Part shown: positions 7,301 to 63,537 of the stretch, piece by piece
How positions within the stretch are numbered: position 1 is the first letter of the stretch
How the letters are laid out: every line of letters starts with the position of its first letter
DNA from: Mizuhopecten yessoensis
Taxonomy: Eukaryota
Assembly (NCBI RefSeq): GCF_002113885.1
Contig: NW_018404943.1
Span: forward strand, 892,363 to 956,362
DNA: 64,000 nucleotides
Direction of reading: 5' to 3'
The notes under the pieces: generated by a model
What the model saw: only the letters and a program-made list of their open reading frames with translations
Database searches by the model: none
Told to the model about the DNA's origin: nothing
Position numbers and translations under genes: made by a program

Positions 7301-10300
7301 TATATACAGTAGCGATATCTAGGAATGAAACTCCTGATTACAGTGGAGCCACAGCAAATGTGTTCCGATTATGAGATCAAAATACCTTAAACGCTTATGG
7401 TTTTCAAAACATGACACCTTGTTTAATTACACTCGAAACTTATATTTGAGATTATCCTGCCGTGTTATTACATTTTACTGGTGACCCATATTTAGGACGG
7501 TGTAACGAAGTTTGTGTTTAAGGGTAACTGTTGCCTAAAAAGCTGGTTACCACTAAATAAGACATATATACAAAATCGCATTGATAAAAATATGATATGA
7601 TCTGAGACACATGTTTTTATAATTATAATTATGCAATATTTAAAAATTTCATTAATACATTGGATACATTTTTGTTTACCTTTGGTAGTACAATGTACAT
7701 GTACCTGGTTGCTATCTATGAATCATTTTTTTTCTGCTGTTAAATTAACATTACAAAAACCCAGACAACATTTGAAACTGATGGCTCATTTGAGACTGTT
7801 TTATTTTTACGTCAGACTTATATTTGAGACTTCAGATTGAACATATCCGGGGCAATTAAAAAAGCCACTGTTGAAAGCAAAATCTTTTCTGCGAGATAAA
7901 ATACCAACCTGGATGCTGTGGACCGGTTTCACCTGAAGTAAGGAAATTACATTAGTGCATTGGACACTTGATAAATCAGTATTAACAACAAATGAGAAAA
8001 AGACAATCTATGAGTTTGGCGACACATTTCTATCTATATTGTACTATACATACAATGCTTGTAATATCAGCATACTGTGATCTGTGAAATTTAACCCTTT
8101 CACCCCTATGTAACTTTAGTGAACTCTACCATGCATTGATTTTGGCGAGTCCATTATGGTTCACAGTGGTGAAAGGGTTAAGGATCCCTGGCCCTAAGCA
8201 GGTAAAACAATGGAGAATTCCATTGTTTTACATAGTGTCACCACCTTTTTATTTTGTTTCCGATATAAAAGTAGCAGGTCTAAGGCCAGATGATTACCAT
8301 CGACTTGGTAAACAGATAATTGCGAAGTCTGTTAGAGAGAGCCTGTTTCATGTAAGGAGGTGTAGGTTTTAAACCCAGAGAGGCCCTTTTCTAAACACTT
8401 TCTTCAGGTTGGTAGGTATGGATTATGAAAAGTTCTTTTTTTGTACTGTCACCTTCATCAGACAAGTGACCAGTGAAGCGTATGTACCCAAAGGTGTAAA
8501 ATATGTACGAGTTGTCCACAAAATCGATGTTGATTTCGGCTACGCTGTAAGCGTATGTACAATAAATGTTATGTATGCACCGAAATTACTCGATTCAGCT
8601 ACGCTTTGTTTAAGCGCTCTGGTCATTTGTCTGATGAAGGTGACAGTGTACATATCTTACTAGTCATCGAAACGTCACATAGAAAATTTTATTGGTTGTG
8701 TAAAAAGAACTTTTCATTATTCAGATAGGCCTTGTTTATGCAATTATGTTAAAACATCTGCAGCTATATAATAATGTCTTCCATCAAATCCAACGTACGT
8801 CTGTAGAATATTCTGTAGTTATGGGTCTCTTTTCAGAAATAATTTAATACAGCTATAGCCATGTGAGCAAACAAAAAACACTTCCAATGCATAAGGAGAG
8901 TTTTTGAGTGAAGAATTATATTTTCTAACCATATCTGTTACATAGCAATGTGGAGCTTGCTTAGCTGCTTCTGTATCCCCACAAATGGTTAAATCTTACC
9001 TACAGCTCCAGTATACCCCTGTGGTCCCATTGGTCCAGTGCTTCCGAAACCTGTATTCCCAACTACACCTGTCGGTCCTATTGGACCAGTATGACCTGTC
9101 CATCCTATTGGTCCAGTATTTCCTTGTGGTCCTGTATTCCCAACAAAACCTGTAGGTCCCATTGGACCAGAATATCCTGTCCATCCTATTGGTCCAGTGT
9201 TTCCCTGTGGGCCCGTATTTCCTACCACACCTGTAGGTCCTATTGGGCCAGTATGTCCTGTCAATCCTATTGGTCCTGTGTTTCCCTGTGGTCCTGTATT
9301 ACCAACAACACCTGTGGGTCCTACTGGTCCAATACCTCCGGTCAAACCTATAGCTCCTGTGTTTCCCTGTGGTCCTGTATTACCAACAACACCTGTAGGT
9401 CCTATTGGTCCAGTACTTCCTGTCAAACCTATAGCTCCTGTGTTTCCCTGTGGTCCTGTATTACCAACAACACCTGTAGGTCCTATTGGTCCAGTACTTC
9501 CTGTCAAACCTATAGCTCCTGTGTTTCCCTGTGGTCCTGTATTACCAACAACACCTGTAGGTCCTATTGGTCCAGTACTTCCTGTCAAACCTATAGCTCC
9601 TGTGTTTCCCTGTGGTCCTGTATTACCAACAACACCTGTAGGTCCTATTGGTCCAGTACTTCCTGTCAAACCTATAGCTCCTGTGTTTCCCTGTGGTCCT
9701 GTATTACCAACAACACCTGTAGGTCCTATTGGTCCAGTACTTCCTGTCAAACCTATAGCTCCTGTGTTTCCCTGTGGTCCTGTATTACCAACAACACCTG
9801 TAGGTCCTATTGGTCCAGTACTTCCTGTCAAACCTTTAGCTCCTGTGTTTCCCTGTGGTCCTGTATTACCAACAACACCTGTAGGTCCTATTGGTCCAGT
9901 ACTTCCTGTTAATCCTAAGGCTCCAGTGTTTCCCTGTGGTCCTGTATTACCAACAACACCTGTAGGTCCTATTGGTCCAGTACTTCCTGTCAAACCTATA
10001 GCTCCTGTGTTTCCCTGTGGTCCTGTATTACCAACAACACCTGTAGGTCCTATTGGTCCAGTACTTCCTGTTAATCCTAAGGCTCCAGTGTTTCCCTGTG
10101 GTCCTGTATTACCAACAACACCTGTAGGTCCTATTGGTCCAGTACTTCCTGTCAAACCTATAGCTCCTGTGTTTCCCTGTGGTCCTGTATTCCCAACAAC
10201 ACCTGTAGGTCCTATTGGTCCAGTACTTCCTGTTAATCCTAAGGCTCCAGTGTTTCCCTGTGGTCCTGTATTACCAACAACACCTGTAGGTCCTATTGGT

Positions 10301-63100: not shown

Positions 63101-63537
63101 CCAGAAATCTGTATTTCAATAGCATTTCATTATCGGTGTTTCCCCCCTAGAAATCCAAATTATAGAATTTGCAAGCGATTTAAAAGATTTTTGCATTGTT
63201 TAAAAAAATGATATTCTTAATTAAATATCGCATAGGAACTCTTAATCTAAATACAATGTAATTCACAAAATATTTGCAGCATACATTAATTTGTATTCAC
63301 GGCATATATTATAAACAAGATGACCTAATCAAGTAGTAAAATTTTGTAATGACAATGACTGGTAATTGAACAGCAGATTGATGACAATTTTTTTACGCTT
63401 AGGTATTACTGGCACAGTTGGTGCTACTGGTAGTAAGGGTGATACAGGAGCTGTGGGCAACAACGGTGCGACTGGTACTATAGGATCAACGGGACAAAAA
63501 GGCCAAGCAGGAACTGATGGTGTTACAGGACCTCAAG
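48067..63537 (+). CDS. Gene B (partial, 3' end outside window): giant Thr-rich collagen-like protein with signal peptide, >2,869 aa
   Basis: Join: 48067-48133, 48298-48563, 50481-50706, 52481-52540, 53603-54355, 55922-63022, 63403-63537. All introns GT..AG, phases 1,0,1,1,1,1, open throughout, ending at a donor (GTGAGG) with no stop. Confidence 0.85.
48298..48563 (+). CDS. Gene B exon 2: first half of N-terminal domain
   Basis: ttttttag acceptor, GAG|GTAGGT donor, phase 1 to 0; homologous to gene A exon 2. Confidence 0.85.
50481..50706 (+). CDS. Gene B exon 3: second half of N-terminal domain
   Basis: ttttgtag acceptor, G|GTAAGT donor, phase 0 to 1; homologous to gene A exon 3. Confidence 0.85.
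52481..52540 (+). CDS. Gene B exon 4: [14 protein letters not shown] linker and start of helix (GPTGLQ)
   Basis: ttaacag acceptor, AAG|GTAAGT donor, 60 nt, phase 1-1. Confidence 0.85.
53603..54355 (+). CDS. Gene B exon 5: 251-aa Gly-X-Y segment with three imperfections
   Basis: ttacag acceptor, AAG|GTAAGC donor; register breaks at GE-GST, GI-GET and G-GVK. Confidence 0.92.
55922..63022 (+). CDS. Gene B exon 6: 7,101-nt exon, 789 Gly-X-Y triplets
   Basis: ctttacag acceptor, G|GTAAGT donor; GGN every ninth base; no register break noticed on reading. Confidence 0.95.
63403..63537 (+). CDS. Gene B exon 7: 15 Gly-X-Y triplets
   Basis: gcttag acceptor, AAG|GTGAGG donor, 135 nt, phase 1-1. Confidence 0.88.

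Follow-up and report, generated by a model that had tools for sequence, protein, structure and literature searches.

The window analysed here, a stretch of 64,000 nucleotides from the scallop Mizuhopecten yessoensis, contains two collagen genes, gene A on the minus strand and gene B on the plus strand, whose features are collected in Table 1. Common to both is an orphan domain at the N-terminus, some 160 residues long, whose N1 part is putative for gene A.

Table 1. Features of the two collagen genes, numbered from the first nucleotide of the window
Feature	Position	Strand	Basis
Gene A presumed 3' coding exon, open frame: transmembrane stretch, basic stop-transfer sequence, cytoplasmic tail to stop	3998..4414	-	translation read by eye
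Gene A third, calcium-binding EGF domain, open frame	4782..4979	-	Pfam EGF_CA E = 1e-7; weak match to Lingula P0165
Gene A two EGF-like domains (FXa_inhibition/cEGF + EGF_CA), open frame, exon ends approximate	7004..7318	-	Pfam; Lingula P0165 match
Gene A triple-helix region, mostly 27-residue unit	9000..12534	-	translation, counts, Pfam
Gene A mucin-like linker of some 60 residues, rich in Thr (26) and Pro (7)	12535..12717	-	translation; AG acceptor precedes
Gene A N-terminal domain, second exon (N2-like)	12862..13077	-	tblastx to gene B N2; splice sites read
Gene A N-terminal domain, putative first exon (N1-like)	18198..18461	-	local alignment to gene B N1
Assembly gap (N run), intergenic	40221..40470	.	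between gene A and gene B
Gene B exon 1: 5'UTR, ATG 48067, 22-residue signal-peptide-like start, phase-1 GT donor	48006..48133	+	sequence; 5' limit approximate
Gene B N-terminal domain, exon N1	48298..48563	+	RNA contig loose end at 50479 matches N1 3' end
Gene B N-terminal domain, exon N2	50481..50706	+	RNA contigs; joint 50705>52480
Gene B small exon: Pro-rich Cys motif PPPPSCDSC, then first two helix triplets	52481..52539	+	joints 50705>52480, 52538>53601
Gene B collagen exon e4: 81 triplets, 4 blocks, 3 short breaks	53601..54353	+	RNA joints; Pfam Collagen
Gene B collagen exon e5: 790 unbroken triplets, 7.1-kb exon	55920..63022	+	joint 54353>55920; donor G|GT read
Gene B collagen exon e6: 15 triplets	63403..63537	+	splice sites, frame

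Gene B is a real, spliced and transcribed gene. RNA-like contigs of 3.7 to 8.9 kb, from three studies, carry the three GT..AG joints of Table 1, all of which were missing from a DNA run with even coverage of exons and introns. In 14 runs from six studies, the share of sampled words present was about 0.80, equal to the exonic share of the stretch. The RNA contigs include about 128 nt upstream of exon N1, and their length leaves about 270 nt past e6. Since e6 closes on a split Gly codon, the helix runs on past the window. No EGF domain was found for gene B within the window. Its product would be secreted, with a signal peptide followed by the N-domain, the Cys motif and the helix.

For gene A, the open reading frame 8989-12846 (minus strand) translates as collagen and is intact over 3.9 kb. 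The mucin-like linker lies in the same exon, immediately before the helix, and this 3.7-kb exon terminates in a split Gly codon, G|GT, in phase 1 (donor site read). The N2-like exon matched no Pfam family, but it is homologous to N2 of gene B (34% identity over 56 residues, E = 6e-6 by tblastx). The N1-like exon, the most upstream one recognised, aligned locally to N1 of gene B with a score of 66, versus 40 for the best of 30 shuffles; both have a phase-1 start followed by Gln, equal length and a phase-0 end. N1 of gene B itself matched no Pfam family and had no credible relative among 1.84e9 representative proteins. Two EGF frames are found 1.7 kb and 4 kb downstream of the collagen exon, on the same strand and in the expected order, and the frame with the transmembrane stretch is presumed to be the 3' coding exon, an assignment based on strand, order and the architecture of a Lingula relative described below. 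Linked in this way from the genomic sequence, the exons would encode an N-domain, a mucin-like Thr/Pro linker, the helix and three EGF domains, followed by a type I membrane anchor at the C-terminus.

Contigs of an independent DNA run were colinear over the locus, had even depth and were continuous with the repeat-rich flanks. The assembly gap, as well as a single N at position 41345, lies between the two genes, and no collagen reading frame crosses the gap.

Proline and threonine positions in the two helices

Exact counting of X and Y residues, set beforehand as the check on the earlier note, revealed that Y-Pro is absent from the about 1280 triplets of both genes. The gene A helix consists of 393 Gly-X-Y triplets, 388 of them without interruption. 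All 129 Pro residues are at X (32.8% of X positions), with a chance probability of 1.5e-39 if Pro is assumed equal on X and Y, whereas Thr occupies 215 of the Y positions (54.7%); the earlier note's observation on its repeat unit, Thr-rich at Y and devoid of Y-Pro, is confirmed. Forty triplets are Gly-Pro-Thr. The helix contains no Asp or Glu and just four Lys or Arg. Its 27-residue unit is present in 22 exact copies, or 27 if an Ile/Leu variant is allowed, and the register spans about 33 units, in agreement with an 81-nt tandem repeat in the DNA (35 copies, 95% identity). The match to the Pfam Collagen family (PF01391) had an E value of 4.5e-166, and the helix would be about 0.34 micrometre long.

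In gene B the suspected lack of G-X-P triplets was borne out, with none in the 790 triplets of e5 and none in the 885 counted over e4, e5 and e6 (about 888 are in the window). The e5 frame (55906-63036, plus strand) is intact and matched PF01391 with E = 0. It has 33 X-Pro (4.2%) and 332 Y-Thr (42.0%), its commonest triplets being GNT (94), GDT (54), GST (51), GAT (36), GIQ (32) and GQT (29); in e4, Y-Thr is 33% and Y-Pro again zero. Over the three exons, X-Pro amounts to 42 (4.7%) and Y-Thr to 41.2%, and the placement of all Pro at X has a chance probability of 2e-13 under the same assumption. Overall Pro is 1.4%, and we know of no animal collagen with so low a share. The helix is at least 0.76 micrometre long.

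Other residues of gene B are also unevenly placed between X and Y (Lys 1/88, Thr 35/332, Asn 128/2, Asp 112/13), a bias of the kind shown by real collagens. Y-Thr avoids an adjacent Y-Thr, with 49 such pairs versus 139 expected (z = -13). The DNA shows no repeat and Thr is encoded by all four of its codons, so this pattern is held at the protein level and does not come from recent repeat amplification.

Gene A and gene B are confirmed as genuine collagens in which Thr dominates Y and Y-Pro is absent. Gly at every third residue over runs as long as 790 and 388 triplets is, to our knowledge, a constraint exclusive to triple helices. Ten named animal collagens have 9-40% Y-Pro (16-40% in nine of them, 9% in a rotifer one) and 2-15% Y-Thr, so that the two scallop helices fall outside the canonical hydroxyproline-stabilised class, marked by substantial Y-Pro, and show the Thr dominance at Y of the Riftia type. 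With no Y-Pro, the substrate of canonical collagen prolyl 4-hydroxylation is absent, and the Y-hydroxyproline mechanism is impossible in both helices.

Fibrillar collagens have a C-terminal COLFI propeptide, a helix of about 338 triplets and phase-0 exons of the 54-bp type. No COLFI domain was found in the window (the C-terminus of gene B lies outside it), and a fibrillar assignment was rejected, given the 3.7- and 7.1-kb exons, the phase-1 introns and the presumed end of gene A in EGF domains and a transmembrane helix.

Origin of the two genes

Such regular frames could be an artefact or dead sequence and not working collagen genes, whether through misassembly or as a pseudogene or Gly-rich satellite. 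The gene A helix is a young array of the kind that assemblers can mis-size, and no annotated protein matching either gene was found in the databases (word search, proteins of 550-4142 residues). Nevertheless, we regard this as extremely improbable, and for gene B it is largely refuted: both long frames are intact, gene B has no DNA-level repeat, spliced transcripts come from several studies, the independent DNA contigs are colinear and of even depth, and the patterns at codon level and by position indicate selection.

Another origin was considered, in which a Thr-collagen module was captured from a bacterium, a phage or a giant virus, the introns and animal domains being added later. In composition the helices equal the collagens of Gram-positive bacteria (X-Pro 31%, Y-Thr 48%; PMC8968730), and the comparison with Riftia cuticle and BclA-type collagens, drawn in the earlier note, is an apt one. 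Moreover, Thr-containing triplets are infrequent in eukaryotic collagens (PMC11923368), the unbroken 7.1- and 3.7-kb exons are very large, and the top-scoring matches of both helices were mostly bacterial, viral or metagenomic collagen-like proteins with 40-57% identity. However, low-complexity Gly-X-Y similarity is no evidence of descent; with the full 7.1-kb exon of gene B, vertebrate collagen VII headed the match list. Both genes have GT..AG introns, and gene B has a signal peptide and a spliced mRNA. No microbial relatives of the N-domain were found, and in the Lingula relative eight exons encode collagen, with equal intron phase. Because of this intron match, any transfer would have to predate the split between the brachiopod and the host lineage. 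Capture is therefore judged very unlikely, and a gene that is itself prokaryotic or viral was rejected, as three introns are spliced out in the RNA contigs and the DNA contigs continue into the flanks.

We consider it likely that these are two paralogous animal collagen genes with a common orphan N-domain, whose Thr-based helices replace the Y-hydroxyproline design. The earlier note had supposed a probable mollusc: the spliced transcripts do support an animal host, and for the lophotrochozoan affinity the support comes from the Lingula relative.

Stabilisation of the helices

In the two helices, Thr fills 41-55% of Y, typically in every second triplet, the other Y residues being Val, Ile, Gln and Lys, a design like that of bacterial and viral collagen-like proteins and of Riftia cuticle collagen. 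Triple-helix formation may be nucleated by the N-domain and the Cys motif. Likely sources of stability are hydration of the Thr side chains, which may also bear an O-linked sugar, X-Pro in gene A and Lys-Gly-Asp/Glu ion pairs in gene B. Y-Lys of gene B is followed by X-Asp or X-Glu in 59 of 88 cases, versus a background of 20% (p = 1.5e-21), an enrichment that appears to be a strong, independent stabilising signal. Given a Pro content of just 1.4%, the stability of gene B without modification is not assured.

The earlier note had gone further and proposed Riftia-type glyco-collagens, in which most Y-Thr would be O-glycosylated, this being needed for folding, and which would be independent of oxygen and prolyl hydroxylase. 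With 41-55% Y-Thr the helices follow the design of Riftia collagen and BclA, gene B is nearly Pro-free, and Thr at every second triplet would fit bulky glycans. The mucin-like linker before the gene A helix suggests that the protein passes an O-glycosylating pathway, and a phage-like contig has a Thr-collagen gene amid glycosyltransferase genes. A (Gly-Pro-Thr)10 peptide folds only if its Thr is galactosylated (PMC11923368), but natural chains, being long and equipped with a trimerising domain, fold in cases in which short peptides fail. No glycosyltransferase or other sequence evidence for the modification was found within the window. The 33% X-Pro of gene A and the ion pairs of gene B offer other means of stabilisation, and in Hyp-free bacterial collagens like Scl2 the Lys-Gly-Asp/Glu enrichment is a sufficient stabiliser. 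Many bacterial Thr-type collagens fold unglycosylated after expression in E. coli, and unglycosylated recombinant BclA reportedly forms a helix. Obligatory glycosylation thus appears possible rather than probable.

The independence from oxygen and prolyl hydroxylase does not follow from Pro being at X only. Scallops are not low-oxygen specialists, which counts against this reading, and Y-Lys, about 11% in gene B, is the site class of the oxygen-dependent lysyl hydroxylase and may be hydroxylated there. The X-Pro may be hydroxylated too: earthworm collagen is especially rich in X-4-Hyp, and invertebrates have a relatively high content of 3-Hyp (PMC8233474).

Taken further, this last point gives a different account, in which X-Pro is 4- or 3-hydroxylated in annelid-cuticle style, especially in the Gly-Pro-Thr and Gly-Pro-Ile triplets of gene A, and a prolyl hydroxylase is still needed. 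The 129 X-Pro of gene A, with the 40 Gly-Pro-Thr among them, would offer many sites, and Bann and Bachinger are said to have obtained stable helices from Gly-Hyp-Thr peptides in 2000. However, with X-Pro at just 4-5%, X-Hyp could add little to gene B, and no enzyme or substrate evidence was found in this analysis. We consider this account rather unlikely.

Relation to known collagens

A close animal likeness is to a protein of the brachiopod Lingula anatina, LOC106170605 (P0165), with 24.6% X-Pro, 1.9% Y-Pro and 41.7% Y-Thr. Its layout resembles that predicted for gene A: after the collagen come FXa_inhibition/cEGF/EGF_CA domains, and the C-terminus is formed by a transmembrane helix with a tail. 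The gene A EGF pair matched best its membrane-proximal pair (44% identity, E = 1e-17 pairwise and 1.4e-18 by local BLAST), a kinship of moderate weight, EGF domains being widespread and promiscuous. In all three genes, phase-1 introns split a Gly codon (G|GN) in the collagen region. EGF domains, composition and intron phase together would thus support the kinship. In contrast to the giant exons of genes A and B, the P0165 helix is split over at least eight exons and has some interruptions; P0165 alone has three IgGFc_binding modules, and its N-terminus proved unrelated to the scallop N-domain on comparison. The Lingula EGF-collagens, which are shell-matrix proteins, have been described as a domain shuffle of the Lingula lineage, in a study that does not discuss Thr/Pro positional composition (PMC4595640).

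Textbook animal collagen relies on 4-hydroxyproline at Y, and exceptions are known from microbial collagen-like proteins and from the cuticle collagen of one vent worm, species-specific according to a review. The scallop transcribes at least one collagen, gene B, with no Y-Pro over about 890 triplets, and gene A has none over 393. The brachiopod protein of like composition, together with the scallop genes, suggests that building on Thr is a strategy inherited more widely among animals and not a vent adaptation. Much more tentatively, and with considerable doubt, the scallop genes might be grouped with the Lingula EGF-collagens and with the cuticle collagens of annelids, which have never been sequenced in full, as a single lophotrochozoan class of ancient origin. 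Its members would be micrometre-long collagens in which Y-Hyp is replaced by regularly spaced, probably glycosylated Thr at every second triplet. Such a class would be an animal solution parallel to that of bacterial collagens, overlooked because the protein databases searched lack the genes, and the scallop pair would be the first complete gene-level handle on its nucleation (orphan N-domain and Cys motif) and stabilisation. The pair also offers a natural contrast for Hyp-free stability, gene A being rich in X-Pro and devoid of acidic residues, and gene B having little Pro but many ion pairs, and both are possible templates for recombinant collagen materials made without prolyl hydroxylase.

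The cuticle collagen of Riftia pachyptila resembles genes A and B in having Thr rather than Hyp at Y, a very long helix and a globular end domain (PMC11766948, PMC11923368). Galactosylation of its Thr has been demonstrated and it contains some Hyp, whereas genes A and B are known from sequence alone. The scallop is not a cuticle-bearing worm; Riftia is nevertheless related to molluscs and brachiopods, an affinity that would be shared if the Lingula kinship is right. Thr at every second triplet and the Lys-Gly-Asp/Glu enrichment are measurements on the scallop genes only. No annelid cuticle collagen was found among the database matches (word search, proteins of 550-4142 residues).

BclA-type, phage and giant-virus proteins have an X/Y composition near-identical to that of gene A and share with both genes the absence of Y-Pro, long unbroken helices and a non-collagen N-domain; in one giant-virus and one bacterial protein, Y-Pro was at most 0.3% and Y-Thr 61-69%. 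Some bacterial and viral collagen-like proteins are glycosylated on Thr. Unlike them, the scallop genes bear introns and domains of animal type, gene B a signal peptide and gene A EGF domains with a predicted type I anchor. In bacteria, Thr often comes in consecutive runs, Thr following Thr in 76% of cases in a Microgenomates protein versus 15-21% in the scallop genes. Streptococcal Scl2 is similar to gene B in its low Pro, many charges and Lys-Gly-Asp/Glu pairs, likely the main stabiliser, but it is not Thr-rich (PMC11923368). This charge mechanism cannot apply to gene A, which has no acidic residues.

Among vertebrate proteins, CCBE1 has EGF_CA domains and collagen repeats, as gene A does, and the membrane collagens XIII, XVII, XXIII and XXV unite a helix and an anchor in one protein. 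Membrane collagens known so far are of type II, anchored at the N-terminus, and use Y-Hyp. In contrast, the predicted anchor of gene A would be C-terminal and follow the EGF domains.

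Positions of threonine and proline in the two helices

Exact X/Y counts were obtained for the two collagen genes, gene A on the minus strand (collagen reading frame at 8989–12846) and gene B on the plus strand (55906–63036), where X and Y are the second and third residues of the Gly-X-Y triplet. The gene A helix consists of 393 triplets, 388 of them in a single unbroken run. All of its 129 prolines were at X and none at Y, and Thr occupied 215 of the 393 Y positions (54.7%). For gene B, the three larger collagen exons within the window (e4, e5 and e6) hold 885 triplets, with 42 prolines at X, none at Y, and Thr at 41.2% of Y positions. 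Exon e5 taken alone has 790 triplets without interruption, the commonest being [15 protein letters not shown] and GQT, with 42.0% Y-Thr, 4.2% X-Pro and not one G-X-P triplet. With X and Y equally likely, every proline would be found at X with a probability of 1.5e-39 in gene A and 2e-13 in gene B. The exact count therefore bears out, on every point, the claim of the earlier note that Thr dominates Y and Pro is confined to X in both genes, including its remark that gene B lacks G-X-P triplets. The 27-residue unit reported for gene A is also present, in 22 exact copies (27 if Ile and Leu are exchanged), and matches a tandem repeat in the DNA with an 81-nt unit, 35 copies and 95% identity. No Asp or Glu and only four Lys or Arg were found in this helix, and Pro fills one third of its X positions: it is a young, uncharged repeat array.

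These values were compared with those of ten named animal collagens, fetched from vertebrates (collagens VII, XXVII and IV), coral, Hydra, starfish, sea urchin, rotifer and beetle, for which Y-Pro ranged from 9 to 40% and Y-Thr from 1.7 to 15%. Arg, which was at 7–14% of the Y positions in this set, was at 0.3% in both gene A and gene B. Among residues other than imino acids, Arg is the best stabiliser of the triple helix at Y, where it is also contacted by HSP47. Judged from composition, its near absence suggests that the two helices do without the HSP47 chaperone route. Values of the scallop kind were found in a giant-virus collagen-like protein (Y-Pro 0, Y-Thr 61%) and in one from a candidate-phylum bacterium (Y-Pro 0.3%, Y-Thr 69%). 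According to a review, Gram-positive collagen-like proteins have 31% X-Pro and 48% Y-Thr, and human collagens 34–42% Y-Pro/Hyp (PMC8968730); the composition of gene A coincides with the Gram-positive figures. Literature searches on molluscan Thr-type collagens (scallop, bivalve, scallop byssus, tubeworm cuticle collagen) found no paper describing them. Scallop byssus is almost without collagen according to the literature, so that a byssal role for gene A or gene B gains no support.

Exon organisation and transcription

Gene models were searched one exon at a time, and exons were joined only for reading frames across confirmed joints. The features of the two genes are collected in the table.

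Features of the two collagen genes, apart from the helix exons of gene B
Feature	Position	Strand	Remarks
Gene A collagen exon	AG acceptor 12717 to G/GT donor 9000	-	linker, then helix
Gene A N2-like exon	12862-13077	-	34% identity to gene B N2 over 56 residues, E = 6e-6
Gene A N1-like exon, weaker	18198-18461	-	alignment score with gene B N1 66, shuffle maximum 40
Two EGF-like domains	7004-7318	-	Pfam; downstream of gene A helix
Calcium-binding EGF	4782-4979	-	Pfam; downstream of gene A helix
Hydrophobic transmembrane stretch, basic stop-transfer and tail	3998-4414	-	downstream of gene A helix
Gene B start	~48006, ATG 48067	+	signal-peptide-like start
Gene B N-terminal domain, ~160 residues	48298-48563 and 50481-50706	+	two exons (N1, N2)
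Gene B Pro-rich Cys motif, PPPPSCDSC	after N-terminal domain, directly before helix	+	frames across confirmed joints

The collagen exon of gene A opens with a 60-residue, Thr/Pro-rich, mucin-like linker containing 26 Thr. Its N1-like exon resembles gene B N1 in phase, in its Gln start and in length. From their arrangement in the sequence, the N-domain, collagen, EGF and transmembrane exons probably belong to a single gene A. The presumed 5-kb intron between the N1-like and N2-like exons carries two minisatellites (13113–13935 and 16389–17949), one with a 22-nt and the other with a 40-nt unit, each in 39 copies.

Gene B was examined in sequencing reads. In 14 public runs from six studies, 0.78–0.80 of the sampled words of 53640–63600 were present, which equals the exonic share, and in six larger runs 0.93–0.94, as for genomic DNA. 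Reads of three small runs and one large run, whose types are the tool's guess, were then mapped to 50400–56399. RNA-like contigs of 8942, 8928 and 3663 nt contained the joints 50705>52480, 52538>53601 and 54353>55920, all three GT..AG and none seen in the DNA run, where exons and introns were colinear at a depth of ~10–18 except in a few repeat-rich bins. This is the pattern of mRNA versus genome, and gene B is spliced and transcribed. Its helix is laid out as 2 triplets, 81 with three short breaks, 790, and 15. Because the final exon in the window breaks off inside a Gly codon (63537), the helix must run on past the window end, where the C-terminus of the protein also lies; with 0.286 nm per residue, the ~2660 residues inside measure ~0.76 micrometre. 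The Cys motif that precedes it may form an interchain disulfide knot.

RNA-like contigs from two runs of different studies left e4 at 54210 and resumed at 62854 in e5. The jump preserves both the reading frame and the Gly phase, falls within 15 nt of shared sequence and lacks GT..AG. Possible explanations are a template-switch artefact, a deletion allele and a short isoform minus ~2300 helix residues.

The assembly has an N run at 40221–40470 and a single N at 41345, both between the two genes. No collagen frame and no mapped exon crosses the gap, and its continuity is therefore irrelevant to the collagen finding. A strongly G-rich block at 21296–29893, also between the two genes, was considered as a third collagen gene and rejected: it is a non-coding minisatellite of 8.6 kb, with GC skew up to +0.7 and 51-nt units followed by 55/165-nt units, and its minus-strand ORFs are repeat read-through. 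An intact reverse-transcriptase ORF of 661 residues (37659–39644; RVT_1, E = 6e-35) ends ~580 bases before the gap, and is preceded by tandem arrays at 31951–33573 (26-nt unit, 62 copies) and 35478–36897.

Signs of selection on the gene B helix and proposed sources of stability

Residues of the gene B helix are sorted between X and Y as in real collagens (X:Y of 1:88 for Lys, 35:332 for Thr, 128:2 for Asn, 112:13 for Asp and 69:13 for Ala). Following Y-Lys, Asp or Glu occupied the next X in 59 of 88 cases, versus a background of 20% (p = 1.5e-21). The Lys-Gly-Asp/Glu interchain ion pair reportedly about equals Gly-Pro-Hyp in stabilising power (Persikov and colleagues, 2005). Interactions of this kind have been credited with the stability of the Hyp-free streptococcal collagen. 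Thr at Y favoured every second triplet, with 49 adjacent Thr-Thr pairs versus 139 expected (z = -13) and a lag-1 autocorrelation of -0.47. All four Thr codons are in use (181/96/30/25), and no DNA-level periodicity was found in the helix. The Thr pattern is therefore kept at the protein level, and was not left by a young repeat.

As there is no Y-Pro to hydroxylate, the canonical Y-Hyp mechanism cannot operate in either helix. The earlier note had gone further, and taken the restriction of Pro to X as a sign of independence from prolyl hydroxylase and oxygen. This step fails: 4-Hyp is abundant at X in earthworm collagen (PMC8233474), and the many Y-Lys of gene B could be substrates of lysyl hydroxylase, an oxygen-dependent enzyme. 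Hydroxylation of Pro and Lys is known from other scallop collagens (PMC9168380).

By analogy, O-glycosylation of Thr in the two helices is plausible. Riftia offers a precedent, and the peptide (Gly-Pro-Thr)10 was shown to fold solely when galactosylated (PMC11923368); the mucin-like linker of gene A, the even spacing of Thr residues and the very low Pro content of gene B point in the same direction. However, nothing in the sequence of either gene requires it. We favour a mixed mechanism, in which Thr together with beta-branched or Gln residues at Y would stabilise both helices, X-Pro would contribute in gene A and Lys-Gly-Asp/Glu pairs in gene B, and the N-terminal domain and Cys motif would nucleate the helix. 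In the cold-water Yesso scallop, should that be the host, the helices could make do with a modest melting temperature.

Relatives and classification

Word-index protein searches with the gene A helix, the full 7.1-kb exon of gene B and a 1000-residue piece, over lengths of 550–4142 residues, returned nothing above 57% identity, and neither a self-match nor a mollusc protein; within this length range, both genes appear absent from the searched databases. Generic long collagens and the bacterial, viral and metagenomic matches (at most 57% identity) were rejected as kin, their likeness being low-complexity similarity. The protein most identical to the gene A helix (53%) lies at 8001–14216 of a 165-kb metagenome contig with a terminase gene, and four large genes for glycosyltransferases and methyltransferases flank it; this neighbourhood suggests a Thr-collagen of phage type that is accompanied by glycosylation genes of its own.

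Only an EGF-domain collagen of the brachiopod Lingula anatina (LOC106170605) was retained as a relative, because its non-collagen domains match. This protein of 2861 residues has a signal peptide, an IgGFc_binding module and a helix of ~350 triplets, after which EGF domains alternate with two further IgGFc_binding modules, up to a transmembrane helix and tail. Its helix has 24.6% X-Pro, 1.9% Y-Pro and 41.7% Y-Thr. The EGF pair of gene A and the membrane-proximal EGF pair of the Lingula protein are 44% identical (E = 1e-17). All introns next to the scallop collagen exons are in phase 1 and split the Gly codon after its first base (G/GT), as read at 9000, 12717, 52539, 53601, 54353, 55920, 63022, 63403 and 63537. 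In the Lingula gene (12162–17455 of its gene region), the same phase-1, Gly-splitting donor was present at 7 of 7 inspected exon ends, with a matching AG acceptor at most exon starts. Fibrillar collagens, in contrast, have phase-0, 54-bp exons. A horizontal origin of the helix module has composition as its sole positive support, and any such transfer must be older than the split between the brachiopod and scallop lineages. Passages of the Lingula genome paper (PMC4595640) regard shell-matrix collagens that combine EGF, EGF_CA and FXa_inhibition domains as a group newly arisen through domain shuffling within the Lingula lineage, and passages of a 2026 proteomics paper again hold EGF-collagens to be characteristic of Lingula; the passages of both papers contain no discussion of Thr/Pro positional composition.

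The N-terminal domain that the two genes share is an orphan. Gene B N1 was searched exhaustively with HMMER against 1.84e9 representative proteins, and no credible relative emerged; the four weak matches (repeat proteins and archaeal surface proteins) were judged spurious. Pfam assigned no family to the N-domain exons, the best ESM Atlas match to N1 (0.86, viral hypothetical clusters) was under the stated reliability line, and BLASTP of N1 and N2 against the N-terminus of the Lingula protein detected no similarity.

Judged by the sequence within the window, neither gene belongs with fibrillar collagens, canonical Hyp-type collagens or sequences of prokaryotic origin. Gene A and gene B form a Thr-type animal collagen family in a scallop genome, with a brachiopod relative, and the pair represents two contrasting Thr-type members set head to head, of which gene B is transcribed. 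By working principle, the closest known systems are Riftia cuticle collagen and the bacterial and viral Thr-type collagens; by kinship, the closest to gene A is the Lingula EGF-collagen.
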